This document shows, piece after piece, positions 4,624 to 62,772 of a stretch of DNA of 64,000 nt (position 1 is the stretch's first letter; the number at the start of each line of letters is the position of its first letter). The translations under genes were made by a program, and so were the position numbers. Location of the stretch: assembly GCA_965649825.1 (NCBI GenBank), contig OZ287705.1, positions 984,865-1,048,864 of the forward strand, given 5' to 3'. A model generated the notes under the pieces. It made no database searches and was not told the origin of the DNA. It was given only the letters and a program-made list of their open reading frames with translations. The stretch is from Penicillus capitatus (lineage: Eukaryota; Plantae; Chlorophyta).

Positions 4624-5345
4624 ACGCGCTCGACGGATTTGGATAACCGACGATCGTATGCGTCCTCGTCAGAGTGCTCATTGTGTTGCTATAATGCTAT
4701 GAGAAGTCATTGAATTTTTGTTAAAGCCAGCGCGGACAAACGTCACATCATATACAACAGCCACGGATACGTTCTTTTGCTAAGTGTTCACGTTTCTCGT
4801 GTGAGTCCCCGAGAAAACTCACAGCGTTTTGTGTGAGCAATCAGAGCGTGTGAGAATTGATCTTTCTGAGAAGGTAGAAAGAACATGACCGTCGGAAAAC
4901 AGTCGCATCATTTTGACCTACCGTTTCGCCCCTCCCGCGTATCGTTCGCATCGGCGTCGTGTCAATCTTTCGCCAAAAACCTCGGTGCTGAGTACAATCG
5001 CCGCGAATTCTTGCCGAGACGCTGTTCATGCGCCTTCGTTTTGACTCTGCGATGCGATGGCCCATTAAAATGATGCATGCTCAACCCTGTGTTCGGTGAC
5101 GGCGCTGTCTCCATGCCTTGAGCGGTGACATTCAATTCCGCGGCGGCGTTCGTTGCGCGACAATGCGTTGAAAAATGTCGCCGTGCAGCTTTGGCGGACA
5201 CGCGGCAACATGCCCCCGCTGAGCTGTCCTGTCGAAATCGATCCTTCACAGTGCTGTACGCGGCGGTTCCTCTGTGCGCCCGTCTTCTTTCATGTTTTCG
5301 CAGAAACTCCGACTGCTAAGAAGGAATACGTTGTTCTAGAGTGCC

Positions 5346-16100: not shown

Positions 16101-17026
16101 AACGCAAACATGTCGCATTTGTGTGACCTTTGCCCATTGGACAAAGACAACCCACGTTTGAACCGAGAAGACGAAAACTTGGTCATTGTTCGGACCCCAT
16201 GCCACACGAATGGGGCCATTCAAATCCACTTGTGCACACATCATCACTCTGAACTCTATTTCTTCATCTTTATCCCATACCTACACCAAAACGTCTCACT
16301 CTTTCACCTTCACACTTCTCACTCTTTTTACCTCCATCAAACTTATTTTTCGATCCATACTCGCCACCAGAAGGCGGTTCGAATCCGCTCCCAAGAAATG
16401 CACAGACATGATATCATCTTGATGCGTCTTCACCAAGACACGCGCATTGGAAAGACGATTGATAATGCGCAAGTCTCCTGACTTGAGTGCATAGCAGAGA
16501 AACCTAAACCGCTTATAACTTCGGGCACTTCATCCTCATGCCTTACGTGTTATTCGCGGCTATTTGTTTCGCGTAGGGCAAGTCAGAATTCGCAGCGTTG
16601 TCGGCCCTGAGGTGCGTTACGGTTCGCACGAGTAACTGCGGCAACGACTCTTCTTCTTCCGACTGGAACAGCTCCTCGACGTCACACTCGAGACGTCTGC
16701 TCTCATCGAATGTCAAGCGACGACCAGCATAAGACTTGCGCACAATTGCCGGAACCTCCTCTACATTGTGACACAGCACGTCGCCTCATATCGACCAAGT
16801 GATCGCGTTTCGCCCTGGACCCAACGTTGCTGCCTCGTACGACCTTCGGCGGGATCGATTCTGAACTTGGCGGGCGTTGCGCGACGAGGCGGAGATGGAG
16901 GAAAGACGAGAACGAGGAAAGTGTTATGGTACCTTTCGGGGTGTGTTGTTGTTCGTCTGTCTCATCCGCGGCGCCGCTACCAGGAGCAATGGAAGCTAAG
17001 AACGACGAAAAGTCGAATTCAGACAT
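13126..17026 (-). CDS. EDC4: Enhancer of mRNA decapping 4 / VARICOSE
   Basis: N-terminal WD40 region (GRRL...PQLLVRTVT...KQIAANNTFLCYALK), a central coiled coil (FRESFSDSIVPAFELAVQNMFGQI) and the C-terminal CPLSQSVLLSLLNQIG motif. Confidence 0.9.
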
Positions 17027-17115: not shown

Positions 17116-19717
17116 ATGCAAGAAGAGGATACCTTGAAATTTGCGCCCTTGCAAGTGTCGTTCTCGATGTAGAGGGCTCGAGAGGGAGATACCGAATGTA
17201 GAGTCATGTGGATATCAGTTTCTGGTCGGAATTGGGACGAAGGAAGCTCGAAATCTATCGACTGTCCGAAGAGGCCGTATCCATCTGGGGTAGAGCAGCA
17301 ATGTAGAGAAGGAGGTGATGTAGTGTGATTGTGTGACCAAGGATACTGCTCTGTGTCTCGACGCAGCGATGCAGCCTCGTCCGTTTTGTTGGATAGAACG
17401 TCGTTCGATCAACATCACGAACGCAAAGTGCATCTCGCCCACTGTGTAGAAATAAAAGGCGAGTGGAATTGGATGTCGTGGAGCAGGGATCGTTTAAGCT
17501 CCTGGGAGAAGTGTACGTCATGAACAACATCGAAGATTTCAAAAATTTCGACAGAAAAGCTGCTGTGGAGAAAGTGTGATCATTGCTCGATGCAAAAAGT
17601 GTGAGAAGGGAGTAATGTCGATGAAACAAGGCGGTTGAAGAAATGAAGAAGAGTATGAATGAAACGGAAGTTTATGATTGCGAGACACCAGCGGCTTACA
17701 TGCTACAGAGATTTGTACTGCTGACCTATCCAGACCTGAAGAATTATGAGTATCGCTATTGGTGAGATTCTCCGCTTTGGCAAAGCGTGACAGTAAAGAG
17801 TGACCAGGTTTGCGTTTCCAGCCATCACCCCACGTACCCCCTACACAGCAGCACCTCCTCAAACACTGAGCGCCGTCTGCAGATCTGCAGATCAGGTACA
17901 GGACGCGCTTCGAAAGAGTGCTTTTCTATTTCTCTCTGGCAGTTCTGCAGAGGACTGGATGCCTGGCTTGGTCAAACAGACGGCTTTTCACGTCCTCTGT
18001 TTCGTTGTCACACATCTTTGCAGCACGACGAAGGGGGAGAGACCTTCAAAGGGATCGAAGGTTTTGCCGACCTGCAAGATTCCGAGACTGTTCTCTGCTT
18101 GCTGGATCCATGTCATCTCCCCCATAATCCAAGTTGGATCTTGCGCAATGTTCTTGCTCTGCTGTCATCTTCAGCCACGGAATACAAAGTACTGCTGCCC
18201 GCTGTCAGTAGAGAGACAGCTCTCGAGTACAGGTTGTCTGTTTGCGCCAACGAAACGGCAAAATCTCGTCGTTGGCATCTCTTGTGTTCACTGTGCACAT
18301 CGCCAAAGAAGCCTGGGAGGACATACGTTCTGTTTCGGGTTGGGAGGCCAATCATCTGAACAAAGTCGCATCACGGTTGTCCTTCCTCACACATTTTATG
18401 CAGTACATCTCATCTCACTCAATTTCTTCCTGTACTTAGAAAAATCAACCTTCGAAGTCAGTTCGATCCAAAGATGTTGGCAGAGGAAGCCATTGGACTG
18501 AACATTCAGCTGATGTTGTGGAGAGCTGCTCCTTCGCTCGATCTCGACACCTTAGTGAACACGAAATGCGCGCTCATCGGTGCACATCTGTACAGATGGT
18601 ATACAGTTGACATTTGTTCGTGACAGGGATGGGGACGCTGGGATGTCACATTGCTCGTTGTTTGCTCGGATGGGGCGTTCGGTATCTTTCTGTGATCGAC
18701 TGCGGCCGCGTTTCTTTCTCGAATCCTGTTCGGCAATGCCTCTATGAATTTGAAGATTGCCTGGAAGATGGCAAACCCAAGGCCGCTTGTGCAGCAGAGC
18801 ATCTTCGCCGCATTCACCCTTCTGCCGAGATACAGAGCTATACACTGAAGGTTCCAATGCCTGGCCACCCTCCTCTTAATGCACAGGATCAGACATCAAT
18901 GCAACAAGTGTGATAGATGAGATCGATCAGAGCAGCCATAAATGTGTGACTTCAGGATACGGAACAGTTGCACTCTGTCATTGAATCCAACGACGTCGTC
19001 TTTCTTTTGACAGACAATCGAGAGAGTCGATGGTTGCCAACCGTCATCGGATCCGCTCTGCAAAAAATTGTCATCTGTGTTGCTTTGGGCTATGACTCCT
19101 ATCTCATTATGCGACACGGCATGTGTGAAGAGGAGGACAATGCAGCATCAGCTTTGCGACTTGGCTGCTATTTCTGTAATGACATTCAGGCTCCGACAGA
19201 GACCACAGCACACTTGGCTCTGGACCAGCAATGCACTGTGGCACGTCCGGGACTGGCACCAATTGCATCTGCCTTAGCCGTTGAGTTATTGGTCTCGCTG
19301 TTGCATCATCCATCCAAAGCGCTTGCTGCACATGGACTGCCAGATGAGCACGGTGGCGCAGCGATGGCATCGAGCTCAGTAGCTGCTGGTGCTTTGGGCG
19401 GCGTGCCGCACATGATAAAGGGATCCGTGTTTCATTTTTCGATGGCCTGTGCACACGGTCCTGCTTTCTACCAATGCACCGCCTGCTCAGAGGCCGTCAA
19501 AGCAGCCTATCTACAAGATCGTTGGCCCTTTGTCCTCTCCGCTATTACCGTAACACCATTCCGCTATCCGATCGGTCTCATGGACTGTGTTGTGTTCCCT
19601 GTACAGAACGACACCTTCCTGCAAGACTTGACAGGTCTAACAGAGCTCCTAGAGAAAGCAGAGGCGCTCATCGAGGCAGCAGCCAGCGATGCCGATTCTG
19701 AATTTGAAGTCTTCTAA
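17116..19717 (+). CDS. ATG7: Autophagy E1-like enzyme ATG7
   Basis: LKFAPLQSHVDISFWSEL, DLKNYEYRYWFAFPA, GLNIQLMLWRAAP, GMGTLGCHIAR, VSFSNPVRQ, RLGCYFCND and LDQQCTVARPG (catalytic Cys). About nine short introns. Confidence 0.96.
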
Positions 19718-19732: not shown

Positions 19733-22322
19733 TTAAAACGATTTCTCTTTGATCGGACGCATGAGTCTCAATACCCACAGAGTCACAGCCATAGCGACAC
19801 CCGCACCCGTACAGATCCAGAAATTCAGTCTTCCTCTCTTCAGGAGACAGACCAATGTCGGTTGTGGTCCCGAAACGCGGAGCGCTTCCAAAAGCTGCTG
19901 CAACGCTGCAAGTTCGTGTCGACACGACTGGATATAGAAAAAGGCAACATCAAATTCGGCTCTGCCTGAATGCAGCAGCCCAACGGCCATTTTGGACCGG
20001 AAAAGATTGCTCCGGCGATAAAACTCCACACTCTCCTGCTCTTGAAACACTTCCTACAACAGTGCATCCATATGAGATGCTTTCTCAGGGTGGCTGGTGG
20101 CTTACAGATGGTTGGCCTGTTGTGGACAGCCTCTCCATCAGAGTATACAGATCCAGGACCTGCTGCATCAACTGCGAGGCCTGCGAAAGAATTACGTTGC
20201 GCTTTGCTGAGCGTTGCAGAGAATTGGACAGCATCTGCATCGTTGACATCTCTCCGAAAGGTGTCGGTCCAACATTCCATCGATAGTCATGCATACGTCC
20301 CTGTGCCGGTGACCAAAACTCCGACGTCTCTGCCGCAGCCCACACTGCAGAGGACGCCGTCAGGCAGCAGACGATCAGTTTTTGGGCAGACCTGTTTGGA
20401 GTAGAGACGCCATGAGGGGTCGACTAATGTTGGTCGCCGAGATGGAGATGATCTGACCGCCACACGACATTTCGGAAAGGTATGTCCCTTCGTGTGTCCG
20501 TACGCCCAACACAAGATCCGAGAACCCAATGGACTGGGCTCCGTTTTCGAAGGACAAGGGAGAGATTTTGGCCAATTCCAGCACAAAGACGGGTACGATG
20601 CGCACATCGGGATTGGCAGAGGACAAAGGTATCTGCACATAACGATCGTCTCGCATCATCGACTGCACTTCGGGATCTGAGAACCACTTATGCAGAATCA
20701 ACGAATCCAGGAACTCCGTTTCTTCCACCACTAACCCCGGCCCTGGTCTGCGTCCAGTCCGTGTCGAGAGAGCCCTAGAAGCAGAGAATAGAACAAGAAA
20801 GAGGAAGGACTGAACGCACTGAGCGTAGGCAGCTGTGCAGCTGTCACATTGGCCAAGAGCCACATAGTAATGAAAGATCTCGATGCTCTGTCCTTTGAGA
20901 TTGAGACGATTGAGCTGCTGCAAAATCTCATCCATCTCGGCCGAATGCATCGTTTCGGTATCGGGAATGAAAGCATCGTGGATGTGCACCACCGGAAGGA
21001 TCAGTTTCTTCCATGCTGGCAGCGACAGACTCAACGTCTGGGGTACCATGAGATGCTAAACAGCACACAGGACCTGTCGAGTCATGGCTGGAAAGGGCCA
21101 GGGGTGGACTTGGATGGCGGACTGGATCATGGCAGCCAGATCGGGGACAATGGCTTTGTTCTGTAGTCGCTTTGGATAGTTGCCCACTTTTGGAAAACTG
21201 TGCTCCATGACTTGACCAGATCCCTCACGCAAGGGTCCGTATCTAAAGGGACCTACTCACACATCACACTTTTGCCTATCCATCCATACACACAAGCAGA
21301 CCGGCAGAAAGGTCCACCCACATGTAATGGGCAGCTTCGGAACCGTCTGATGACATCCAGTAATTGCCAGGACAGCTCGACTCCCTTACACACGACAGCA
21401 CTTTTCCCTCGTTTCAGATGCCAATGCAAACGATACCTGTCATCGTAGCGATAGACATATGGTATATCGACTTGGACATTGGGGTTCAGTATGTAAAGAG
21501 AAGGAAGCATGCGAGATAACTGGTACTCTGAATGCACCACAGCATCCACCGCTTCGTAAGGAATCGATGCCATCGTGGGAACTGCACACAGACACCCATC
21601 TCACTCTTTTACCCTGCCCATAACAGTCCGACATGACAGAGGCGAGTCTATCTGTCTGGATTGCATGCGGATGGCGTTTGCAATCGCATCTTCTGTTCGC
21701 TTTGCCGTCGTCGTCTTGGCCGAAACGGCACCATAGGTCACCTGGACTGGAATACGCTGCGCCAAACACATGCATGACCATCACACATGGTCACTCTTTC
21801 TGATATACGGCATCGTTGGAGTGGACCCTGTCATCGGCTGGATATCCCAACGGACGGATTTCGAATGCCGTATAGAGATTTCGCAGATGTTGCATCAACA
21901 TGCTTCGATCCAGTGTGACCTGCGATGCCCTAAACGGCATAGGAAGGTCAGAATACAGCACAGCGTTGTCTCTGTCTTCACCCATCCCCGTCCCATCCCA
22001 CCAGGATGACGTCAATGTGGACACTCATCTTCGTGTCTCTCAGTTTCGATCGCAGCGCTGCGAAAGAGAACGCATGATGGCTATCCCAAATGCGCTGTAC
22101 GTTTTGAGGCAGCTGCACAAAAGTGTCCACCCGTGCTTCGGGATCTTCTCCCACCTTAACCCGCATGCATCTAAGCGAGGCAGTACACGCATACGAACGC
22201 ACCCGGAATAGATTGCGGACGGCATTGAGTTGATGGTACTCCTCCCGCCCGTCTTCCGCGGCCCATACCACAACCAGCGCCGCCAGCCACAGTACTGCGT
22301 GGATAAACGCGTCGCGACGCAT
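19733..22322 (-). CDS. Secreted / single-pass membrane protein resembling the plant At5g58100/At3g28720 uncharacterised family
   Basis: Signal peptide MRRDAFIHAVLWLAALVVVWA, then VHIDVILVGWDG, SLYILNP and IVPVFVLEL, and a C-terminal hydrophobic segment followed by basic residues. The family assignment is from recognition only. Confidence 0.65.
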
Positions 22323-22342
22323 CGTACGACAAACAGCATCCA

Positions 22343-23281
22343 TCATCCGTCATCTTTCTTCTTCTTAACTCTGATCTTTAGTGACGTCCCAAAGAGTCCT
22401 TTCTTGCGTTCCTTGGCCTTGGAAGACCCCTTAGACGAAGGCTTCGCCTCTGGAAGGGACGGCTTCGGCAGTTTGGCTTTTGCAGGACTCTCCTTGTCGC
22501 TCTCTGGCCGATCCGTTTTCTGTAGTTTAGCACGTTGTTGGTAGAAGAGGGTACGGATGGTTTCTTCGTCATCGGGATCGAGTTCTTCAGAGAGGAGTCG
22601 TTTCTTTGTCTCTTTCTCCTCCTCTTCTTTTTCACTCTTTTTCAGTGCTGACAGCACTTGGTCAAAACTCAGCTTCTGTTTTCGAGCATTGAGACTCCGC
22701 AGCTCATCCAAAGCAGACAACACATCCATCTCACGTTTGCTATCCAACTGACGATTCTCCAATGCCTTGATCGCATTGCCACGTTCCTAAACAACCATCT
22801 TTGCTACGGACGTGCCATCCAATATCTGTCTGCGAAGGACCTCCTCTTCACGCTCTTTCTGTGAGAGCTTCTTCGACTCTTCCTCCTCTCTCCATGGCTC
22901 GTAGTTCCGAGAGGCACCGGACTCCACTGTGTAATCCGAGTTCTTAGGATCTGTCAGAATCGTATACTCTGCCGAGCAGTTGGAGCAGCGAAAGTAGAAG
23001 CGATAGATCTGGATGCCGAGATAGTTCTTCCCATGGACGTCCTCCTTTCTCGAATTGAACTTTGTTCCCTTGTACATAAAGTTCCCACATGTCTTGCATC
23101 TGAGACACCCATCAGCATTCATGCGTCTGGAGATATGTGTGAGATGTGTTGCTTGCCTGACGGACATCGGCAACATCATTCGGATCTTCATTTGATGGTC
23201 CTTTGCCATTTTGACTTTGGGTATGAGTGCCGGATCGAAATCCGGTGGGAAGTATTTGTTCAGTACTTTGCGCTCTCCCAT
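22343..23281 (-). CDS. YJU2: Splicing factor YJU2 (CCDC94/CWC16)
   Basis: MGERKVLNKYFPPDFDP, MLPMSVR|CKTCGNFMYKGTKFN, YLGIQIYRFYFRCSNC and TDPKNSDY. One GC-AG intron (23100-23156) and one GT-AG intron. Confidence 0.95.
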
Positions 23282-23329
23282 CCTGTCGCGTTCACGTTCA
23301 ACGACGAGCCCTTCAGGCGAAAAAGATAG

Positions 23330-24224
23330 ATGGCTGTCGCTGTCACCCCCATGAAGGCATTAAATGAAGACATCGGACGCAGGACAGGTTGCATTCCGCC
23401 GCCGCTGGTCGCCAGCGCAGAGCCGACCTTGAGAGATGATGTGACGTTATAAGCCGCGACGACGCCGCGAGCGTCCCATACGTGCCAGTATAAACACCAC
23501 ATGCGGGTCGATTCTTCCTGGGGCCTCGCCGTTCTTGGTAATCACACACAGAACTCTCCGCCTTGTCGTCATGGTCATATCATCTCCAGGCTATCTCTTC
23601 ACATACTACCATACGAAGGTCTCAGATGAGAGAAAACAACGAATTGACCGCATAAACGAACAGGTGTGATGGCTGTCTGTCACCGACTGACCACCATCGA
23701 CTGTGCTGTTTGCTGTGTCTGTCAGTTGCGTGAGTTCTATGGACCCTTGTTGTCGTGTGTCTCGGCATCAAAGTCATCATACGATGCCATGGTTCGGCAA
23801 CACAGCCCCGACGGGACGGTTGCTGGATTTCAGCGCGCTGTCTTGGCAGACCCCGAGGGAAAAGAAGGACAAGTATATCGTACGTGGATGCTGGAAGTGC
23901 TGCAGCCGCTCAATGAGAAGGCGTCGAATATTGTGGTCGAGCACATCGATTTACTCGACTCGCCAAGAATTGAGCCGTTACTGTTGCAGCTGGTATCCCA
24001 CGTCGCGGCATACAAAGTCATTCTCTCGAGGTGAGTGAGAATGGAGGAAAGTACTAGACGGGTGATGTGACGTTTGTATGGTGTCTAGATGGAAAGAAGG
24101 CGACGTGAAGACAGAAATCGTGGTGCTGTCTTATCCAGACCGTCTTGTCGAATACATACGATCCGAATTTGCACGATTGAAGAAATTACAGGCGCAGCTC
24201 ATTGGACGCCGATCTCGTCTTTGA
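23330..24224 (+). CDS. Conserved hypothetical protein with an N-terminal hydrophobic segment
   Basis: The spliced frame reads LAVLGYLFTYYHTKVSDERKQRIDRINEQLREFYGPL...WMLEVLQPLNEKASNIVVEHIDLL. Clean GT-AG introns. The start is either 23330 or 23501. Confidence 0.7.
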
Positions 24225-27500: not shown

Positions 27501-30500
27501 ACGATGATAGAGATCTGTGAGATGTATCGTTGGACGGCATCGAGCCAGCGACATCCTGACCCGATAGCATCACCATCCATCACCTCCATATCCCACACTC
27601 TCATTAAGAATTCCTAAAGGCAACCAAGAGTGCTCGTGCATGTGCTGTCGCTGTGCCGAGACAAACATGGTGTGAATGTGACCGACGGAAGAGAGTGAAG
27701 ACTTGAGCGAGTCCAGCGACATGCTCCACCCAATCGGACACTGTCCACGAATTCCTGGCTTCGTTGGATGTCAAGAGATTCAGGAATCGTTGACAGATGC
27801 CATGGAAGATTCTTTCAAAGGCATCTCGCTTCCATCCATTGGCCATACCGCTCTGTACAGGGGCGCTCTTCAGCACGGCTTCTTTCTTGACGCGTGGCAA
27901 TATCTCTGGCTCCGCCTTGCACAACATGGATTCAATGCGCTCTTGTACATAACGATATGCCGTGCTCAGTGTCCCATACATCTGCTGTACATCCTGTTGG
28001 GGCAGGCACAGGGTCATTTGATCTTCAGCGGTGTGTGTGGTGAGGGACAGAGCGTGCTCAAATGCGACCATCCATTTGAAATGATGACTGCTGCGGAGGT
28101 ACTCGACAGAGAAGAGCACTCTCACAATACCGACGTACTTATACATCGCGTCCAGCATCGCCATGAACTGAATCTCTCTTGCCTGATCCACCAAGGCACG
28201 TTGTTGATCGACGGCAAGACATTCATCGATGATCTCTTTTGGCAGTAGGGTTGCTGGGGAATGCTCGCCAAACAGATGGCCCAGAATCGAATCCCGAGCA
28301 GTGGGTGTCACGAAATCCATTCGGTATGGAGCACAGGCCGAATTCCATTGATCCTTTGAAAGAAGAAGCAACTCGTCGGACTGGTAGAATAGAACCAAGA
28401 GCAGATGGCCATGACGATAGCACCAGTTTTGAGTGAGTTTCAGAATCTGTTCCAGTGTCTCGTGCGCTTCGAAAAGGGACTGGCGATGCTCGTGGCTCAG
28501 GATCTCCTGTTTCTGGATCTCTGATCGGCACACGTCCTCTGCAGATATCTCAACTTCCAACAGGTTTCCAATTTCGGATTCCTTTTGCTGCAGGCAGTGT
28601 TGTTCATTCAACAATCGCCGGCAGGCGGCAACGGCACAGAGAAACTGATGTGACGTGTCCTTGATGTTGTGCAGTGCGGCGATGTAGTCTTCGATGACTT
28701 CTGCCTCGAGGCGATGCAGCAGGAGCCGGAGTTGCAGAGAGAGCTCCAAATTCTGATGGAAGGCACGTCTGCTGCGTTCGGATGTCCAATCCATGACTGG
28801 ATCTTTGAGCATGGCTTCCAGAAAGACCATGAGGATTCGCTCATGCTGGCGTAGAATCTTCAGTCCTTCAGAAAAGACACTTCGAAACACGCCTTGCAAT
28901 CCACCACACCCCATGGCCACCTAAATCACACTTCTCACACATCTGTCCCATCATCACCGCAGCAATGACCACCTCAATTGCACGGGTCATTCTGAAAGGA
29001 ACAATTTCGGGTACTCTGAGCTTCTCCCCACTGCCAAAGCAGAGGTTGAAGTCGATGTTGACCACTTCAGCCGTGTTCATGTCGAACAACATGTTATCCA
29101 AATGACGATCTCCGATGCCCAGGAGATAGCACAGCATGTTGCCCAGAGCAACAGACTCGGCAAATCGCTGCGTCTTCTTCCACTGTACAGCAGGACTGGC
29201 TGAAATGCCACGAATCTCATTGAACAAGAAATCAGGAGACGCCTCAGATTGCAGCTTCTCAAACACCTAAACACATTCCTGCAGCAGCACGCCATCGTCC
29301 ATCTCTCACACCTTTTCCAGAATCTCAGGGGCAATGGAGGTCCTGGATGCTGTTCGTGGGAGATTTGCTTCGCGGAGAGTCGTATTCAGAGCTTTCTGAA
29401 AAGCGTCTTTCGGATGATGCGTGACAAGCATAGAGATCGGTTTCGCTTCGGACAGTGATGCATTCATCTCCTTCAGTTTCTTCAGCTGACGGTGTTGCCA
29501 CTGACGAAACAATGCGTAGAAAGAGACCGTCTTATCGACCCATTCGATCAGACCGATATGGTTGCCCAGTGGTGTCACACTGTAGACACGGGGTTCCTGA
29601 AAACGGTGGGCCACCATGAGTGTGTTCATCACACGAATGAACTGCAACAGGCGTTGATCAATGTGCAGATCTTCTTTACCCTTCAGCAGAAAGCAATAGG
29701 ATTTTCCATTCGAACCGATCAGGGAGAGTTTCTTCGGACGTGTCTTCGTCGAGAGAATTTCAATCTTCTGTCCAAAACGCGCGACTGTCACACTTTTGTC
29801 GTCCACACCTGATCCATAGGTCACACATAATTGCTGGGAGTAGAGGGATGTCACCAGGCATAGGGATCTGCGTGTCTTTGAGGCTTGCGAGTCTGGGGGA
29901 GATCTGATCGAAAGGCGGCAGCGGTAGTTTCACTTCCTCCGCCGCTTCCTTCAACAGCGTCTTCAATTGAGCCCATTTCTTCTGAATCTCTCGCGGATCG
30001 AAGTCCTCCAGTGGCGCTTCTAGAGATGCGATGACTGCTTCGCATCTGGTTTGATGCTTTGCCCAGTAATGCCGTTCGAATGGCGTTTCGCAGCACTGTG
30101 ACTGTTTCTCACGGAAGCCCCTTCTGAGTGACTCTGCCAACGGTTGCATCACGAGTGCGTAGCTGGTCTTCAGGATGTCCGGCCATTCGGATGTTTCCGT
30201 CTGAGAACGGATCCGTTTTATCTCTTCATTGAGGACAGCCAGACGCACTTGGCTCTCAAGCTGTGCATCCGATATGAAAGCGAGCCATTCCTCCGAGAGC
30301 AATGCATGAACGCGCTGCAGTTCTTCCATAAAGAGCGAGACATCGTGGAGCAGCTGTGGATTCTGCTGTCGGAAGCTATCCATCAGTTCCTCAATTTCTT
30401 CCAGAATGGCATCGTCTCCAGCCTTCTCTTTGTTCCATTCGTCCATGAGGGCATACAGGATACGAGAGGGCGCTACGGCAGTAATGTCTTTAAGTATGCG

Positions 30501-33500
30501 CACCAGACATCGACGGACGTTTCGGTTTGTGTGATTCAGAATAGAGAAGAGCTGACTGGAGAGCTGCTTCCAGATGTGTGGCGAGATGGTGCAGATGTCT
30601 TCCATCAGATCTTCATCCAGAAAGACGGATCCATGATTCTTCAGAAGATCAAAAAGCTCAATGAGGATCTCCACATCCACTTCTGTCACATCACAGAGAT
30701 GCAGACATTTGGCCATCGCTTTGGCAGCGTTTTGCAGAAGGGAAATCTGATCGATGACATTGTCTCTGTTCGACAAAAGCATCTGACTAAATTGCTTCCA
30801 GGCCCAAAAGTGCTTCGGACAGCGTTCCAGTGCATGGGCCATGCAATAGGCTTGAATCTGGGAAACGGAACCCAGAGTGCTGGGTCTTCTCACGGGAGAT
30901 CTGTGACCTTCGGTCAGCTGCTGATAGTACTGGCTTTGAAAGATGTGCGTCACATCAGGAACGTGAACAGAGGCCAGAGCTTCATCAAGAAGGGGTCTAT
31001 CTACATAACGATTTAGGATTTGTGCAAAGCGTCCTAGCCAAAGGGAGAGGAATTCAGATGTTGATGGATCAACATCAGGTTCTGCCGTTTCTGCTGCTTT
31101 CACATGTCGAATAAGCACATTCCAGAAATGCACGAGCATCAGATGCGCTTGTTTATCATTGGTGCCGTCCATAAGTGCCAATTTGCATTTGACAGCAGCA
31201 AAGGCAAACTGCAGACGGAGGTCCTCGTTGCCAATGTCTTCTTGAATGGATTTGATCAGACGTGCAGCGTGGTCAGCGTTGTCACGTTCAGTGGCAATGT
31301 GGGCCAAGATCAAAGCAATGGCACATCTTGCTTCTGTACTGCCCATTGCAGACGCCAATCGATGGATATTCATCAGCCATGCAACATCCAGACCACGGCT
31401 GCTCAACAATTTGCCACGCCCCATTCTTTCCACCTCTTTGGGAAAGAGGTACATCAGCACGAAATCAGGGGTGTGCATTTGGGCGACAAAGCACAGCGGT
31501 TCCAGGAGAGAAGTGGCATCATCTGTCAGCATCGCATGCATCGCCCTGAGGATCTCCGCCTGCTGATCACATGCATTATTCATCAGCAGATGACGTCGTT
31601 GCAGTATACTATTCCAGATAGTATCGGACATCTTGTCCTCCTCCACATGTACACCGTGTTGCTTGAGACAGCGGTGGACGGTCAGGACAGAATGGGCCGT
31701 TGAGAGATTCTGCATATCTGTATCGAACGTCTGCGATTGCCACGTCACCAATCGCTCGACGACACTGTCAAGGCTTCCACGATCCACAAGCATTTCAAGC
31801 TCCATGCATTCCGCATCGACCATGATGACGTCTGTCATCTCAGGGAGTTCTTTTGCCTTGGCAAGTGCCTCCCAGTCCGCCACTCGACGATGGCACACAC
31901 AGAGACGTTTGAGCAGAAAGAGCTGGAGAAGACGGATTCCGGGGAGAAGAGATGACTGGATCTCTGTCGAGACGCCCTCTGTCAATTCCTCGTAGACATG
32001 TCGCACGAGACTGTACTGTTGCTGGTAGTGTTCTTGAGCATGTTCGAATTTTCCTTTCGCTTCCAAAGACATCCCTTCCATCCACAGCAGCAGTCCTCTC
32101 CCATCCATCTCTGCAAGGCACTGCATCCAGTCATCTGCAAAGGGCTTTAGCTCTCGTTGCAATCCCAGAATGGATGCAGGGGAGGAGAGATGGATCAGTG
32201 CCAGACATGTCATCTGGATCCCCTCTATAAACTGTTGGAAGAAATGCGTGAGCTCGTCGATGAACTCTTTCGATGGTTCTTGCCGAACTTTGAGGACGGT
32301 CTGCTTAGGCACCGTGCATTGCTGCAGTTCGGAGAGATACGATTTCGTCTTCTGGCATTGCTGCTGAAGGAATACGGTGCCCAATTGTGCCGCAAGGTGA
32401 TGGAAACCACATTTCTGACTGACAAAGAGCTGCTTAAAGATCAGTCGACTGAAGCCCTTTTCAAAAACGGCTTTGTTGGCAGAATAGTAGGCCCATGTCG
32501 ATTGCGGAGGAGATCGAGTGAAATGCGCTCCATCGTAGCCACAGAACGTCTGTTGCTGAAGTCCCGAGACAAATTCCAACAGCAGCCAGACATGAAAGAG
32601 ATCGACAGGCTTTCGATCCTGAATATGCTGCTTGAGATCAGATAGACACTCTTCTGCAATCTTCAGCAGTTTCGACGGTCCGGATTCGATGGAGCGAAAT
32701 CGACTGGCCACGATAAACTTCGCCGCTTCGTGCACCAGCAGATGCGATTTCTCAGCCAGTGTTGACACTTCGTCCATTTTCAGAATGGATGTTTTGGTTT
32801 CGTCTGCGAGACTGGGAGACAGTCCTTGGCCAAAAGACTCGATCCAGTCCGTGGAAGTGATCTCCAATTTGCTGGGCATTGTCCCGGACATCATTTTTTT
32901 CAAGAGGGATGCAAGTTGGGAGGATTTAAAGGTGTAGATCTGGGGTTGGAGAACGACCGTCAGAAGACGATGTGCGTTTTGACGGGAGAGATTCTGAAGA
33001 TCGAGCAAGCTGAAATACCCACAGCCTTTCAGGACCTCCAACGTCTTTTCAAAGAGCTCTGTGTTATGACTCGAGGCAAAACGATAGACATGGTACAACA
33101 GATTCTCCGCCGTTGTGAAATGCAGCCGTTTCTCAATAACGACCTGCAGCACCGACAAGAGAGCCTTCTTCTGCATCACTGTTGTCGAGCTTCGAATCTT
33201 TTCCACCAAAAGGTTTTCCAGCTCGATTGGCAGATCTCTATGCGAAGCCATGCTCCGCAGCACTTCGGAGAGCCACTCAAGGAGGAGAAGCAGAAGTTTT
33301 GGCTGCTCTCGTGATGCCGGATTTCTCAATGCAGCCATCAGGGCGTCCAGAACAGGCAAGGGTGTGGATGAGACTTTCCACGCTTTCCTTATCAACCTGA
33401 CAGAATGCAGGAGGACTAACGGATGTAACTCCCTCGGACCTCGATGCAGATCCGAGACAGCTTCCCATACAGGATCCGAAAGATCTTGATGCTTCTCGTC

Positions 33501-35115
33501 ACTCAGACACCGAAAAAACAGTGTCATGGCAAACAGCTGTCGCCTCAGCACTGTCGAATCTGTCGACAGAGGGTGATTCAAGAGACTACTGCTGCCTGAG
33601 TGGACAGCTTGATGCGTGCTATTCAATTGTGTCTGACCTCCAGAAGTGACATGTTGATCTTTTTGATCCCGACCCTGTGTCTGATCGCTGCATGACAGGT
33701 CTTGTAAGAACAGCTGAGTGAAGAAGAGGTGAAGTGATGGGGGTGATGTACACAGGAGGATTTGATAGACGTCAGCGATGGCTTCGACCACCGGCTTCCA
33801 ATGACTGAGGCGCAGTTGATGTAGGCAACTTCCTGTTCCGTATACAGCATGGCACAATCCCTGCATTTCGACCGTGTGCATGAGTTTTTCGGCGAGGACG
33901 CGATGCAGTTGAATAATGGCGGTGGCAACTTCTGGCTGCAACCGCACGGTTTCCAACCCCTCTGCAATGATCTTTGTCACGTGCACAACGGCATTGGGGA
34001 CGCTTCGCTGGATCAAGATCTCGACGGAGATCGCCAATTGCGAGGCCATTCTGTTTGAGTACTCTTTGACGTCGAGACCTCCTCTGCCGATCGAAGGAAT
34101 GAGCTTCAGGGCACGGATCATGCAGCGAACATGTGCCAGGATCTGTGCAAACATTGAAGACGGCAGAAAGGCCGCACAAGATTCGAAGATGGCCAGCAGA
34201 CATGCCGAAGCGTTGAGGAAGACCAGAGCCGCTTCCGATTCTTCAAATTTTGTGTCCAGTTGATTGCACAGGTCTTTCATGATCGTCACAATGAGCCTCG
34301 ATCCGTGTTCAGCATTGTCTTGCCAGTGAGAACGTAGTGAGGAGAAGAAGCTTCGAACCTTGGGTGCGATCTCGCTCGAGACTTCGGGAGCAAATCCCCA
34401 TCCGATCACAAAATCCACCACCTCAATGAACTGATCTCTCACGGCTGATGGAACTTTACACAGCTGCTGCATGACGTCCAGAATGGCACCGAAGACGGAG
34501 ATGGGGCTATCGGATTGGGCAAGGAGTCGACAACACAGTGCAAGCAAAGAAGGGGCCACCGATTTAAAGGCCGTGCCTTCGAGCTCTGCTAAGCACAGCG
34601 TCAAACCTTGAAGGAGTCTCTCGAGGTGATGCAGAGGGAGGCCTTTTCTGCAGATGTGCTGCTGGACCCATGCCACGTAGATGAAGGGATTGATCGATGA
34701 TCCAGAGAAACGCCCGTAGAGGATGGCCACGGTGCCGGTCTTGGCCAGAAATGTTGACAACTGTCCCATCACCTCATCATCCCTAAACCCACAACGCACG
34801 TCACATCAATGACTAGTATTAGAGTGAGGATGCCGCGCACGCACTTTTCTTCGAAGAACAGGTCCGTCAGTCTTTTCCATTTAAAATGCACCGCGTCCAA
34901 TGTATCGCGCAACCTAGACGTCACACTTTTCTCATACATTTTTTTGTTCGCTTTGTCACCTGTCGCGTTGTTCCAAGACACTTTGCAAAGTCGAGAGCGT
35001 CGTTAAACGCAGTTCCTAGGCCGTACGGTCTGTACTGGAGCATCACTTGTGTGCTCTGTACTTTGGGGTGTGCGATGTCGAGCACGTCGGACAACGCTTT
35101 CGATACTTCGGCCAT
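24575..35115 (-). CDS. SMG1: PIKK-family NMD kinase SMG1
   Basis: KTRPKKLSLIGSNGKSYCFLLKGKEDLHIDQRLLQF, YLLGIGDRHLDNML, KLRVPEIVPFRMT, a long post-kinase insertion and the FATC end NLCRMYEGWMPWI*. The 5' end is approximate. Confidence 0.93.
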
Positions 35116-47790: not shown

Positions 47791-49575
47791 TCAGCCCAAA
47801 TCTGTCGAACTACTGGCACCATTGGTCATCATTTCTGTCCTTATTTCACGATTAAACGCTTCAGATTCCGAATAGAAACGGTGCAATGTACTAGCCGGAA
47901 TTGTGGACCCTTCTCTCGACAGAAGAGGCAGGTACGGTTTCCCCTGATGATTCACAACGGGTTGTTCGACCACAGCTTCGATCGTCAAGAGATCCGATCG
48001 GTATTGTTGCGTTTTGATAAACTCAAACGGCATGGTGATAAAAAAAGATATCAGCGCCGTGCACAGGATAGGAGGCAGTATTTCCAGATGACCAGAGAGT
48101 GATGTGAGAATGAGGCTCGTTGCAAAAGGGGTACGGGTGATGGAGGCGTTCAGTCCAGCGGCACCGGCCATAGTCATGAGAGCAATGGACTGATCGGAAA
48201 GGACTGGAAAGTGGGGAATGCTCAAAACGGCACGAGCAAAAGCGGAACCGGCAAACATGAGAGGAAAAATGAATCCGCCTCGAAGGCCAGACAGAACGGT
48301 AATGCTGATCGCTGCGAGTTTGAAAATACCGATCAAGAGAAAGAGCCATCCTTCGTACTGACCTCCGCGCATAAGCTCTAGTCCCCAGACACCTCCTTGT
48401 GGCCAAACATGTGTCAAAGCATGGGACGAGTTGGCCATGTTGCTGATCTCGAATTCCGACCAGAAAAGCGTCGGTGGTAAGAGAAGTCCAATCAGACCGA
48501 TCAGAAGTCCTCCAACGAATCCTGATTTGACAGGCGTTCGATGTTCCTACGATGCGACGTGTGAGAAAAAGAGTGACCTCACTCACTGTTTCGGTACTTG
48601 AAGGTTTGCTGCGAGCAGCATTTTGTTGATCAATCGATGTTGTTTGATGAAGAAAATCGCGACGACTGCCATGACGATGCCCATAACGATGCAAGCAAAA
48701 AAATGCTGCAGTTCTGTCTCTGTCGTCCCATTCTCTGCAAATTCCCAGATGGGACCAAACTTGAGTCCCAATAATCCTCTGAACACCAACAGTGTCACCA
48801 TTCCTGCGCTCACGCCAAAGGGCAACGCTTCGAAGAACTGCAGTCCTGTGCGATGGGCAACTTCAAAAGCAAAGAGCGCTCCACCTAATCCGACACCAAA
48901 GAAAGCAGCCAGTCCAGAAGCCATTCCAATCAGGGTACAGTCGCGCAGCAGTCGTCCTCTGTGTCCCAGGACCTTTTGTGAAATCCACCCCGTCGTCGAG
49001 GCACACATAGCCAGCAGTGGTGCTTCTGGTCCCAGACTGCCACCGGAAACGATGGTGCAGATAGAACAGAAAAACATCGATTTCAATTGCTGAATCGGAA
49101 CCGCCTCCATCTTATGCACATGACCCACGGTGTTCGGTAGGTCTCCCGGAAATCCCATGTACTTCTGGATCAGTCCAGCGCACGTTGCGAAGAAGGTCGT
49201 GAAGAAGAGGATATTGAGCCAGGCGACGTCTTTCAGCGATACCGACAACTTCTTGGCAATTTCTTCGAGGAGAGGTCGGGAGACGGAGGTCGACAGCGTC
49301 GGCAGGTCCATCATCCATTCCTCGAACCATCCATGAGGCTCTTCACCCTTCGTACCCCAAACCAGTTGTAAGGCAGTTTGGAAGCTTGCGTTATAGAACG
49401 CCGCGAGGAGTCCAGTTACGCAGCCGAAGAAAATGGTGACGAAGAGATAGGTTCGGAGCGTCGGCTGTCCAAAACGATGACGTAGCCAGATGGACAGGTC
49501 GTCCATACATACATCGTTGCTGTCATAGAGCAGCGGGATTTCGACGGACGCGCTTCGTTGAGTTCTCGACTGCAT
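47791..49575 (-). CDS. CLC-family chloride channel/transporter, bacterial YfeO-like, without CBS domains
   Basis: Signature motifs GGSLGPEAP and LRGGFIFP, GMASGLAAFFG and TRTPFATSLIL, with many hydrophobic helices. Only one intron is apparent (about 48540-48595). Confidence 0.85.
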
Positions 49576-58123: not shown

Positions 58124-61100
58124 ATGTCTTCTCAGGCTTCGAATCTCCCTCTCTCCTTTCCCAGAGATCGGCCTCCCTCTTTCTTTCATAACTTTCGCAT
58201 ACGGCATGGCATGCCTTCCATGGAGATCCGCTTTCCACATCCGATAGCACCCGAGAAGCATCACTTGATTCAAGGAGTACGTTCCATTCTGTTTTTCGCT
58301 GGATCATCAGATAATGGTTCTGCAGATCGATGAAAATTGTTGTTTGTCTTGTGCATTCTCCACCGACGATGCCCTTGTGGCTTTCGGCATGCAAAATGGC
58401 ACAGTACTTGTCTACGATACCGAATCTGGTGGACTGATGTGGACACTCGATGAAGATCGAGAGACGCCCATTCGAGAACTGGCGTTCGTGGATGATCAGG
58501 ATTTGCTTGTCTCTGTAAATGAGGAGAGGCGTTGTGCCGTCTGGGATCTAAGAAACGAACCTGTATGTCTATGCGAAACAGATTTTGCTCCCAGAAGGGG
58601 GATCTCACACATTCTCTCTTCAGAAATGCCATGCCTGTCGGAGAATGGCCGTTTCCTTGCCTTACCTGTCCTCCGAGACACCGCATCTTCATCGTCCTCA
58701 TCATCTTGGCGAATCTCCACTGGCTCCCCGAACATTAAAGCACTCATGGCTCCGAGGGCAACGCAGTCCATGCATGTGCATATCTATTCCACGCTGGATC
58801 GTGACAAAAAGAGTGACTCAAAGCACCCAACTCCACTTGTCACTCTTTCTGTGCGGATGGACGTCGGCGGCGCAACCATGGAGAACATGGATATTGTTCA
58901 ATTCAGTCCATCTGCGTCGCGCATTTTGCTCTTGGCATGCGAGGGAGAGTCTTTCTATCTCGTCCTGTGGCCGTCGATCAGCAACAAAGACATCAGTTTC
59001 AAACTCCGAGGCAACAGAGGGACCTTCAGCTCCGATGATCGATACCTGGCAACATGGTTTGATCCCAGTCCATCATCGGCTGACCACACATGCCTGGTGT
59101 GGGACATGAAGCACCTGGAAGCTGCAGATATCAGTTCGCAGAGCCAGAGCTATCAGCATCCAAGATTTCGCACCTTTGACTGCGTCCGTCTGCGAGATGA
59201 GCGTTTCGAAAATATCCTTGCATGCGGTTTCGTCTCTGTCCATTCTGAACCGTCCATCGCAATGTGCTATTCGACAGAGAAAATCCAGATTGTAATCTTG
59301 TCGCTGTCCATGCAGACGCCGATGTGCATCATCGATACATGCCTTGATGTGACCACACATGCCATCAGCTTTTCTGTCTCCTCTGACCAGCACTGGATTT
59401 GTTTAAACTCCCCGATGACGGGCGATGTTACCGTCTGGAGTGCCGAGCAAGGCATCGAGGTCTTCCGGACGCACCAGAGCCATCCAGAGAAGCCATCGCA
59501 ACATTTCTGGTCGGATGTATCTCTTAGTCACACATCGAGGTACATGCTCCTTGCGGAAAATCACCAAGCAGATCTCCTGAACCTCACACCACTCCATTCC
59601 ATGTGTCCATCACCGTACACCGTTCTAACGGGGTCCGAGACCGAAACGATAGAGAGACAACCGATCTTTAAGTTCTCGCTCGATGGACGGTTCATTGGAC
59701 TGTTGATGGCTCCAGGAAATTGCCTGGATGTGTGGTCTCTTCAGAATAAACGGCATTTGAAGTTGGACTGGAAAGGAATCGTCCAAGCGCATCGTTCTCG
59801 ACCGAAAGCAAATCGCACAACATCATTCGAGATCGATCTCATGCTTCATCAATTTGCCTTGTCTCGGAATGGCGACTATGCAGCCAGTTGCATGGGAGAC
59901 AGCTCTGTTTTGCTATGGCAACTCACGACATCTATCGAATGCCGTTTTGTGGCAAAGTTGCCATCAGACTGCTTTCTGCCTCGAGACATCTGTTTTTCCC
60001 ACGACCCGAATGGAACGTGGCGTCTGGTCGTCTGTCAAGACCAAGGAGATCTCATCTGGTTGGATCCAGATCAGGGTCAGATTATCAAGATCGTGCCGGC
60101 AGAGGGCAGTAGAGTTTGTCGGTTTTCGCTCGATGGCACCAGAGCCGTCATGATGTCGGATTTGTTCACCGTTCATATCTGGGATTTGGTACAGCAGACA
60201 GCGTTACACTCCATGACCTACCAAATTCCGCTGCTTTCTCTTCAGAGCTCTCTGATGGAGACGAACATTTTCATGGACGGTCGTTTCTTAGCCGGCTTCG
60301 ACGAGAACATGAAACCCATTGTCTACGAGCACCATCTGACAGAGGAGATGCGCATGGATGAAGTATGTAGCGTTGCCTTTGGGGTATCAGACAACGGCGA
60401 GTGGGGTGTGATGATGCATCGCGTCTCCGATCATACTGAGCCACTAAAGGCAGATGACAGATCGAGAGCCTCCTTCTATCAGAAAAGGTGTCGTACATTC
60501 ACTCCGCGAAACGTCGGTGTCCGTGTCAAGAAAAGTCGCACATCCACTCCGAGTCTCATTCCTTTGACAGGCAAGAAAACACAGTTACCTATCCGTATGG
60601 TGATTGGATCATTAGGTGATGGTGTTGTCAAGCGCATGCAGCTTCCAGACAGTCTATCGGTCGAGAGCCATGTCATTTTTTCCGCAGACGGCAAACAGTG
60701 CGCTGCTCTGGATACTTCACAACGTCTGGTCGTGTGGAATGCACACATGACGAAAGGAAATCTCGTCCAGGAATGTGTATGTCTGCAACATGCCTTCCGC
60801 GCAAAAGAACACCCACCTCATCTCATCGATCTCTTACAGACACATCGCAGCGCTTTGCTAAACAGTCGTGATGAGAATGGAATGACTGTGGTGATGCATA
60901 GTGTTTACTACCAAAATCCAGAAATGCTGAAAGAGCTTTTAAGTTGGGCACTGGCAGAAGAATGTAACGTCACACTTGGCGGTCCCATCTGCATTCCGGA
61001 GACAAACAGCACGGCCAAGAATATCATCGATCTTTCGCTCCATATCAACAATCCCGAAATCACAAAGGTCTTTGCTACTGTCTGTGCCCAGGTCTGTATC

Positions 61101-62772
61101 GAGTTGCTCTCTCTGTGACAGATGTTGTTGTTCTTTATTGTGGACGGGGCGACGACAGAGATGAGCACGGCTCAGATTTTCGAAGAATCCCTTATGGATG
61201 TCGCCTCCGTTTACCCCAGCCTCTTCACAGAGCTCTTGGAACAGCCCAAGCTCATGCGACCGCTCCACACCGTCCGCATTCCTGGAAAATGGGTGCGCGA
61301 TGCCAGACATGTGGCCATCACAACGCACAACAACCTTCTGCCCAGTGCAGAAGCGACGAGCCAGATATGGAATAGCAAAGAGACGAAGCACATCAATCGC
61401 CGCGTTGGAAGACTCTGTGGATACATCTCTGCCGAAGCTTCAGTGCGTATTCCTGTCTGATCCCCATATGAGGAGTGAGTCCCGTTCTAGGTGATTCCCA
61501 TCCCCTGCCTGACACACATCACCACAGGATCTGTGCTGCATCGTCTGAACACCTCACATCTGCACGACTCTGTCTATGGATCCGATTTTGTTCGAGCCCT
61601 GGTCGAGTTCAAGTTTAATGCCTATGGTCGAAAGATCGTGCAGAGAGAGTTCTGTGTGCATCTCGTCCTTCTCACCAGCTTCACTTTCGTGGCGATGACC
61701 TTGGCGTGTCGTGGAGTGGAACACAGGACAGGTCTCACGTATATTTTGGCGTTTCTCTCGGCCGTCATTTCAGCAGGCAATCTGTTGCATTACTGCAGGA
61801 CGGCATACGATATGTTGGTCCAGCATGGACTCTATGGGCTGTCCATACTCCAAGAGTTGTATGTACCATGCATGACACTAAAGTGTTTCGTAACATACTT
61901 CTTGGTCGCCTCCGTCATTCCTATTTGTCTCATCTGGTTTCCAGCGTCTCCATTTCTTGGCACATCTATTGGCATATGTTCTTTGGTCCTCTGGATGCGA
62001 TTGGTTCAGTTTTTCGAGACGTCCGATTCTATTGGATCGTTGATCGTTGCTATCGAAGAAGTGGTAAAGGACATTTCGTGGTTTCTGATTCTATTGCTGA
62101 TGTGTGTCATCGGATTCGGTATCTCTCTATTCTATATCATCAACATTTCTCCCGATCCGATCGAGGGACAACATGAGATGGTCCAGTTCGATAGCAAGAA
62201 TCCTTTTCATTCGATCCTTGTTGCCATTATGTTGATGCTGAGCGATGTCGGCAATATCTTTGAAGCCATTCTCAAGAAAGAGGCCGGCATCCGTCAGTAC
62301 ATTATCATGGGCTTCGTTATTTTCTATGTGAATTTGGTGGCCATCATTTTGTTAAATGTGATGATTGCGATGATGGGAGACAGTTACGATCGGGTTCGAA
62401 ACAGTGAGGGGTCCCTCTTTACGAAACGAAAGGCACAAATCATGCACGGCATCGAACTGCGGCTCTCACGGAGGGAGAAGCGCGACATCAAGTAACCCAT
62501 ATCACTCTCATGCGTGAGCGGTCTCTTCTTTATCATGTTCTTTCTTTAGCATGCGCATGGGGCGTTATCTTCATGTGACAAGACTTAGGGATGTTGCCAT
62601 GGCACCGATGGCGCCATGGACGGGACGTCTGAATGCCATCGGCGAGAATATTAGACAAGAGAATCGAGAACTCGAAAGAAGCTTCACAACTCAATTATCA
62701 GATCTGGATGCACGTTTCACACGCATGGAGCAACAATTGTCGAAATACCCGTTACACCAAACAACAACATAG
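58124..62772 (+). CDS. Multidomain protein: WD40 repeats, an ankyrin-like repeat and a TRP-like six-TM ion channel
   Basis: WD motifs (AFSTDDALVAFGMQNGTVLVYD, VHIWDL), RDENGMTVVMHSVYYQNPEMLKELL (ankyrin-like), VRALVEFKFNAYG, six hydrophobic helices and the S6/TRP-type LLNVMIAMMGDSYDRV. Four inferred introns. The start at 58124 is inferred. Confidence 0.82.

Follow-up and report, generated by a model that had tools for sequence, protein, structure and literature searches.

How can a nuclear gene be expressed when its start codon stands only 20 nt behind the stop codon of another gene on the same strand? The question is raised by a 64,000-nt stretch of DNA from Penicillus capitatus (assembly GCA_965649825.1, contig OZ287705.1, positions 984,865 to 1,048,864), referred to here as the window, whose minus strand carries the splicing-factor gene YJU2 (CWC16) and, immediately behind it, a gene for a type-I membrane protein with a DUF7906 domain, which we call gene B. 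A sequence-only reading of this DNA had drawn attention to the overlap between the YJU2 stop codon and possible start codons of gene B, and had offered an either/or: one transcript carries both open reading frames (ORFs), or the promoter of gene B lies inside the YJU2 coding sequence. The geometry of the junction does force this choice, and an equally tight junction in a sister genome reinforces it. Among the mechanisms considered below, we tentatively place first overlapping transcription units with a nested promoter for gene B. The pair is accordingly presented as a candidate shared or nested transcription unit and not as a proven coupling signal.

Two complete genes at one junction

Read along the minus strand, the junction runs ...AAG AAA GAT GAC GGA TGA TGG ATG CTG TTT GTC GTA CGA TGC GTC..., in which the stop codon TGA of YJU2 (22345-22343) contributes its bases to the sequence ATGATG. 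The frame of gene B (ORF 21978..22346) holds three ATGs, at 22346-22344, 22343-22341 and 22322-22320, and is closed by a TGA at 22352-22350, two codons upstream of the first of them. Between the YJU2 stop and the third ATG, which opens the signal peptide, there are exactly 20 nt (22342-22323), and the inter-ORF distance amounts to -4 to +20 nt. The coordinates and the stop/start geometry given in the sequence-only reading proved exact when the strand was read directly. As a bare pattern, such a configuration is not rare; at 13 of the 192 long ORFs in the window the stop has behind it, within 30 nt, an ATG that begins a reading frame of 100 codons or more, mostly at exon/intron boundaries. What makes this junction special is that its two ORFs are two different genes, YJU2 and gene B, both of which are intact and complete there.

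For the comparisons that follow, two sister loci (L013 and L014) were used, located on contigs of 757 and 601 kb in the ENA assembly ERZ26696514. The identity of the upstream gene as YJU2, previously read from the letters alone, is confirmed by the Pfam family PF04502 (Saf4_Yju2; E=4.1e-72, 244 bits against a cut-off of 27.8), whose profile is reached to position 262 of 332. The spliced model has exons at 23281-23157, 23099-22841 and 22786-22343 (coding sequence 828 nt), separated by a GC-AG intron of 57 nt (23156-23100) and a GT-AG intron of 54 nt (22840-22787). Both introns are confirmed by their raised divergence from L013 (22-26%, as compared with 5-8% in the exons) and by non-triplet indels; the GC-AG intron is 58 nt long in the relative, with 26% divergence, and its excision restores the universal ...MxPxxxRCKTCG... 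of YJU2. This GC-donor intron (CAG/GCAAGC...CTCAG/A) is in frame and stop-free, and callers that work from ORFs would take it for 19 inserted residues. Codon differences from L013 in the coding exons are 41 synonymous and 7 non-synonymous. In a protein search that returned 3185 homologs at E<=1e-10, the top full-length matches were green algae (Ostreobium, Bryopsis, Myrmecia, Tetraselmis, Picochlorum and others, at up to ~60% identity), bearing out the green-lineage origin that had been presumed; a near-identical full-length YJU2 protein was not among the matches.

The downstream gene had been described as encoding a secreted or membrane protein with a signal peptide starting at 22322, and this also holds. 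Spliced gene B matches the Pfam family PF25483 (DUF7906) with E=5.1e-34 and 118 bits against a cut-off of 27, the domain lying at residues 100-330 and covering profile positions 2-215 of 215, with colinear matches in three frames. Gene B also has the architecture of the family: an N-terminal signal peptide, a luminal domain and a C-terminal transmembrane helix. An exhaustive HMMER search of a representative library yielded 323 homologs, of which those of full length (630-730 aa) come from the streptophyte green algae Chara braunii and Mesostigma viride and from transcriptomes. In two of them, one from a transcriptome (P0123) and one from Chara (P0133), the domain occupies residues 88-293 and 103-313, respectively, preceded by a signal peptide and followed at the C-terminus by a transmembrane helix and a basic tail. 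Started at MRRDAFIHAVLWLAALVVVWA/AEDG, gene B has the same layout as the full-length homologs in both hydropathy and domain offset, and the gene call in the relative (P0218) begins at the equivalent of the ATG at 22322. Gene B thus lacks no upstream exon, and the ATG at 22322 is its probable start. The homologs also include fragments that are 45-57% identical to gene B (P0125, P0146, P0147, P0162, P0166 and P0168). A crude 509-aa gene B query had found no match in a word-indexed protein search, HMMER detecting the family later, and a metagenome scan with gene B gave no match either.

The first coding exon of gene B spans 22322-22203, the first intron 22202-22155, and the stop TAA stands at 19735-19733. 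Since this 48-nt intron (GTGCGT...GTTAAG) keeps the frame and contains no stop, the 122-aa ORF reads through it. It is recognised as an intron because of a net +1 indel in L013 and the homolog alignment (LFKLIGEDP as compared with LFR/VGEDP).

The sister genome keeps the abutment but lacks the overlap

The only close match to the first exon of gene B was P0218 (81% identity), which lies on the L013 and L014 contigs. Over the 20 kb compared, these two share 99.4% identity; they may be haplotypes of one diploid alga or separate strains that occur together. L013 is 88.2% identical to the window across the whole 20 kb, and gene order is the same in both: an ATR-like PIKK gene, a small opposite-strand gene, YJU2, gene B, the convergent ATG7 gene, EDC4 and an aminotransferase gene.

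At the sister junction, GGA TGA CGATCG ATG TGT GTT GTC TGT CGT ACG ATG CGT, seven extra bases stand directly after the stop, so that an in-frame ATG follows the stop at 6 nt and the signal-peptide ATG at 27 nt (inter-ORF distance +6 to +27 nt). The sister keeps the TGA, the signal-peptide ATG with identical flanks and, 21 nt before that ATG, an in-frame one whose context is weaker than in the window. Its AUGA-type ATG does not share the gene B frame. Within the spacer, 12 of 30 alignment columns differ (40%, the 7-nt indel included), as compared with 20-35% of columns in introns, 20% in the 3' intergenic region and 5-15% in exons. The spacer is thus unconstrained, evolving at least as fast as introns, and the ATGATG overlap is a lineage-specific by-product of the 7-nt indel, on our reading a deletion in the window, and not a conserved coupling signal. 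The constrained feature is the tight abutment alone, common to two taxa that have diverged by ~12%.

The earlier suggestion that ATGATG/AUGA acts as a translational-coupling signal is not supported by this comparison, the overlap being specific to the window and the AUGA-type ATG out of frame in the sister; nor does any stretch nearby evolve faster than the spacer. As to whether the junction is conserved in related algae, which had been proposed as a check, the answer is divided: the abutment is present in the sister genome, whereas the stop/start overlap is absent there.

Beyond the sister, we inspected five YJU2 loci found via protein identity and six from Joint Genome Institute metagenomes, looking for gene B with tblastn. 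No relative of gene B was found beside YJU2 in any of these 11 distant loci, Bryopsis included, although tblastn has little sensitivity for a protein that evolves this fast, and several contigs among them are short. In Bryopsis, a histone gene lies 1.5 kb downstream of YJU2. Both metagenome scans failed to reveal a close relative, and a transcript-derived copy of the YJU2 or gene B protein did not turn up in the searches.

A nested promoter as the favoured mechanism

Overlapping transcription units, with gene B read from a nested promoter, constitute the mechanism that we rank first, albeit tentatively. Transcription of gene B would begin in the spacer or at the extreme 3' end of the last YJU2 exon, which would place the promoter inside the YJU2 coding sequence, and the protein would be translated conventionally from the ATG at 22343 or at 22322. 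The leader of this mRNA would be very short, under ~30 nt, since a longer one would take in the out-of-frame ATG at 22353; a transcript of gene B alone would have to start 3' of this ATG or tolerate it. The ATG at 22353 is also kept in L013, there in a stronger context. YJU2 transcripts, in turn, would originate in the conserved stretch 5' of 23281 and would necessarily run into gene B, whose first intron begins 141 nt after the YJU2 stop, but gene B protein would be made mainly from templates other than the resulting bicistronic RNAs. RNA that is structurally bicistronic for YJU2 and gene B probably exists whether gene B is reached by its own promoter or by reinitiation. The convergent stops of gene B and ATG7, 15-16 nt apart, also speak for nested units, as they show that RNA-processing signals within adjacent genes are tolerated in this genome. 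That gene B needs a cap-proximal start of its own is inferred by elimination of the other routes, and this elimination, together with an experiment in Auxenochlorella that speaks against reinitiation (see below), places the nested promoter above reinitiation.

Several observations weigh against this ranking. No promoter or transcription-start signal was identified in the last YJU2 exon, and the last 40 YJU2 codons show no significant extra synonymous constraint (2 differences compared with ~6 expected, Poisson P ~0.07). The 219 nt 5' of the junction are free of ATGs, as a hidden 5' untranslated region (UTR) might be, but composition explains this, since 76% of same-codon shuffles are ATG-free as well. 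Gene B is, moreover, the sole gene seen here without upstream non-coding DNA, other 5' regions measuring ~290-600 nt: ~290 nt separate the ATGs of YJU2 and the opposite-strand gene, ~575 nt lie between a kinase stop at 50150 and the ATG of a CLC channel gene at 49575, and ~600 nt between the starts of ATG7 and EDC4 according to gene calls in L013. Were YJU2 polyadenylated within gene B, the transcripts of gene B itself would be at risk as well. Finally, where green algae are well studied, colinear ORFs at so short a distance usually share a transcript (PMC7896298, PMC11291117).

Reinitiation and the weaker alternatives

The least unlikely of the alternatives to the nested promoter is a bicistronic YJU2-gene B mRNA on which 40S subunits stay after the UGA at 22345-22343 and reinitiate at the AUG at 22343 or 22322. 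At -1 to +20 nt in the window and +6 to +27 nt in L013 and L014, the distance from stop to start falls where reinitiation works best, and the want of non-coding DNA for a gene B promoter, which sets this gene apart from the others examined, fits a common mRNA. Green algae do make nuclear polycistronic mRNAs, with overlapping stop and start codons at some Auxenochlorella loci (PMC7896298, PMC11291117), and in Chlamydomonas transgenes with long first ORFs and spacers of 6-10 nt the product of the second ORF was enough for selection (Onishi and Pringle, in PMC11291117). Against this stands the length of the first ORF, 275 codons, as ribosomes normally lose the competence to reinitiate within a few tens of codons (PMC11291117). 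When, in Auxenochlorella, one AUG was put back into a GFP-sized first ORF followed by a 14-nt spacer, expression of the second ORF fell to background (PMC11291117); reinitiation was thus absent in that construct, which implies that ribosomes of that green alga do not efficiently reinitiate behind a long ORF. The overlap, too, is not conserved, the AUGA-type AUG being out of frame in the relative, and the adjacency of the two genes was not found by tblastn at any of the more distant YJU2 loci examined.

Viral coupling offers one known model for such a restart. Coupling that depends on a termination upstream ribosome-binding site (TURBS) operates in calicivirus VP1/VP2 and influenza B M1/BM2, and UAAUG or AUGA overlaps are used in fungal viruses. 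The junction shares with TURBS sites a long upstream ORF whose stop and restart codons overlap or lie within a few nucleotides (UGAUG/AUGA); it differs in that the pair is cellular, that the overlap is absent in the sister, and that no structure is predicted around a UGGGA, located 46 nt upstream of the stop, which resembles TURBS motif 1 (in viruses complementary to helix 26 of 18S rRNA) and is a lead only. The pentamer is kept in L013 and L014, as is the whole exon around it, but its chance of occurring is ~0.1 and no TURBS-type stem presenting motif 1 is predicted around the junction. Folding of 131-138 nt in both taxa revealed no RNA structure beyond shuffled controls (z=+1.1 and +1.4). 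The junction is in fact less structured than these, which would leave the start accessible to reinitiating subunits, and the two taxa do not agree in their predicted pairings; an IRES-like element (internal ribosome entry site) is not indicated, since in neither taxon does the junction fold more stably than its shuffled versions. The fuller claim, namely that this is a natural cellular bicistron in which a secretory-pathway protein is reinitiated -1 to +27 nt after an AUG-rich YJU2 ORF of 275 codons, appears to us somewhat more doubtful still than reinitiation as such.

Much less probable than reinitiation is the processing of one primary transcript, be it by splicing an upstream non-coding exon to gene B or by precursor cleavage or trans-splicing. 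The sole conserved promoter-like region does lie upstream of YJU2, and several AGs precede the ATGs, including a CAG at ~22371. Splicing would, however, need an intron of ~900 nt where introns are uniformly ~47-58 nt, and the candidate acceptors are situated in a purine-rich tract, unlike the TTTAG and GCAG acceptors observed here. As for trans-splicing, spliced leaders are not known from green algae.

That the junction is an artefact, through mis-assembly, a gene B start elsewhere or the decay of gene B into a pseudogene, is very improbable. In favour of such a fault, the window matches part of a 274-kb contig of a metagenome assembly (ENA ERZ25074695), the one contig on which the exact ORF was found. 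The arrangement is not an assembly accident, since the same gene order and a 27-nt junction are present on two contigs (757 and 601 kb) of another assembly; the frame of gene B is open through ~10 introns, its domain offset is that of full-length homologs, and the signal-peptide ATG is conserved together with its flanks.

We dismiss as the weakest explanation a canonical green-algal bicistron with gene B reached by leaky scanning, which same-strand ORFs, a very short inter-ORF distance and a green-lineage host might suggest, because the YJU2 start gacaggATGgga has A at -3 and G at +4, a strong context for eukaryotes in general (though perhaps not by the host's own consensus), and 20 further ATGs lie between it and the second ORF (21 in the 848 nt from the YJU2 start to the ATG at 22322 with the ORF1 start counted; observed/expected 1.49 compared with ~0.45 in real loci), while the first ORF, at 828 nt, far exceeds the medians of 291-357 nt in refined sets.

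Having set these alternatives aside to the degrees stated, we return to the nested promoter as the preferred, if tentative, reading, and list the features on which the argument turns in Table 1.

Table 1. Coordinates of the features discussed, numbered from the first letter of the window
Feature	Position	Strand	Remarks
Stop codon TAA of the convergent ATG7 gene	19715..19717	+	15 nt from gene B stop; 16 nt in L013
Gene B, DUF7906 type-I membrane protein	19733..22322	-	~680 aa; ~10 introns of 47-57 nt
Probable start ATG of gene B, MRRDAFIHAVLWLAALVVVWA/AEDG	22320..22322	-	A at -3, C at +4; hydrophobic core directly after
Spacer of 20 nt, stop to signal-peptide ATG	22323..22342	-	unconstrained in comparison with L013
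In-frame ATG, 21 nt 5' of signal-peptide ATG	22341..22343	-	shares its A with TGA; A at -3, G at +4
YJU2 stop codon TGA	22343..22345	-	kept in L013 and L014
AUGA-type ATG overlapping the stop	22344..22346	-	context cggATGa; in gene B frame in the window only
Out-of-frame ATG, 7 nt 5' of ATG 22346	22351..22353	-	opens a 60-codon ORF overlapping the gene B start
TGGGA pentamer, like TURBS motif 1 (lead only)	22387..22391	-	46 nt 5' of stop; chance in 90 nt ~0.10
YJU2/CWC16 splicing-factor gene	22343..23281	-	3 exons; 275 codons and stop; PF04502
Conserved non-coding region, YJU2 ATG to opposite-strand gene ATG	23282..23571	.	7.6% divergence, compared with 20-35% in neutral classes

Relation to known systems and significance

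Green-algal bicistrons tested so far work by leaky scanning, with a short first ORF in a weak start context (PMC11291117). First ORFs have medians of 291-357 nt in refined and 444-600 nt in first sets, and inter-ORF distances have medians of 40-260 nt (Gallaher 2021; PMC11291117); ATGs upstream of the second ORF are depleted, with observed/expected ratios of ~0.43-0.49 (PMC11291117). As in the bicistrons of Chlamydomonas, Chromochloris and Auxenochlorella, we see here two complete nuclear ORFs on the same strand, too close for a poly(A) site and a promoter between them, the second encoding the larger protein, with the very short inter-ORF distance typical of such loci and, as at some Auxenochlorella loci, a stop/start overlap. 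In contrast to them, the first ORF is a long, conserved housekeeping gene (828 nt), ATGs upstream of the second ORF are not depleted, and colinearity is seen only in a sister diverged by ~12%. The YJU2-gene B locus thus resembles green-algal polycistrons in geometry only, departing from them in the length of the first ORF and in the abundance of ATGs.

A different parallel is found in compact eukaryotic genomes, where overlapping or nested transcription units are known from microsporidia, nucleomorphs and tightly packed tandem genes of yeast. The likeness would consist in promoter and 3'-end signals placed inside the neighbouring coding sequence, and in convergent stops only 15 nt apart; unlike those genomes, this one is only moderately compact (5' regions of ~290-600 nt) and the junction is a local outlier. 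Tightly abutting tandem genes are a known kind of arrangement, and our finding, made by reading and comparing DNA, should be taken as a positional candidate.

Should gene B be made from a YJU2-gene B mRNA, a cellular eukaryotic locus would be seen to support efficient reinitiation behind a long ORF. Green-algal polycistrons would thereby gain a second mechanism of translation, with consequences for annotation and for the design of bicistronic algal transgenes, and the output of the membrane protein could be coupled to that of a spliceosome factor. If, as we favour, the promoter lies inside the YJU2 coding sequence, the locus would offer a clear-cut case from nature of a promoter housed in an exon of an essential gene, in an otherwise only moderately compact genome. 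Under either mechanism, gene callers that demand intergenic space would mis-handle the pair.

Neighbourhood and further observations

The region between the ATGs of YJU2 and the opposite-strand gene (23282-23571) is probably, given its low divergence from L013, a bidirectional promoter with the adjoining 5' UTRs, or else an unannotated RNA, and is the only obvious promoter region that can probably be assigned to the YJU2-gene B pair; a search of it against Rfam gave no match. Within it, 23330-23437 differs from L013 at only 3 of 108 nt. This conservation is not of a coding kind, because all three differences are non-synonymous in the ORF there, and on the same count the ORF 23330-23452 was rejected as first exon of the opposite-strand gene, a reading under which the two starts would have stood 48 nt apart.

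At the other end of gene B, its stop and that of the convergent ATG7 gene are 15-16 nt apart in the two taxa, which means that 3'-end signals can lie inside a neighbouring gene here. The 3' UTRs of ATG7 and gene B must be antisense to each other's coding sequence.

Poly(A) motifs gave no indication of where YJU2 transcripts end. TGTAA, the Chlamydomonas-type signal, occurs 55 times in the window compared with 67±8 expected and has no consistent position after stops, the first copy behind the YJU2 stop being 953 nt downstream; it was rejected as a marker of the YJU2 3' end. Stops created by polyadenylation as in Blastocystis (TGTTTGT after the stop) were likewise rejected: TGTTTGTT occurs 2 times against 2.7 expected, and YJU2 best matches green algae.

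The motif ACGTCAC at 22381-22387 was considered as a promoter element and discarded, its 2.5-fold enrichment in the window stemming from an opposite-strand 10-mer, GATGTGACGT, whose extension and orientation the copy at the junction does not have. The 10-mer itself is present in 13 copies in 64 kb, at 4749(-), 8165, 15819, 23438, 24064, 28647, 34807(-), 35606(-), 39996, 43105, 44902, 51700(-) and 53748, compared with a naive expectation of ~0.1. Five of the 13 stand 10-18 nt before a YAG resembling a 3' splice site, and all three copies in the 20 kb shared with L013 are kept. A role as a regulatory or branch-site-like element is conceivable, as is an origin within a small repeat.

Elsewhere in the window (G+C ~50%), a 100-nt block at 16401-16500, near the 5' part of the EDC4-like gene, shows no difference from L013 against a background of 12%. 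From 24575 to ~35500, the minus strand holds a very large ATR-like PIKK gene, with matches to FATC and PI3_PI4_kinase, a faint one to HEAT_ATR, and an exon of 1681 codons (29763-34805). On the plus strand at 58269-62492, WD40 repeats, ankyrin repeats and an Ion_trans domain follow one another in one frame, with short in-frame introns that contain stops, apparently forming one large and unusual WD40-ankyrin-cation-channel gene; what looked like a second tight tandem pair, at 61115-61491, was rejected, as it consists of in-frame introns of this gene.

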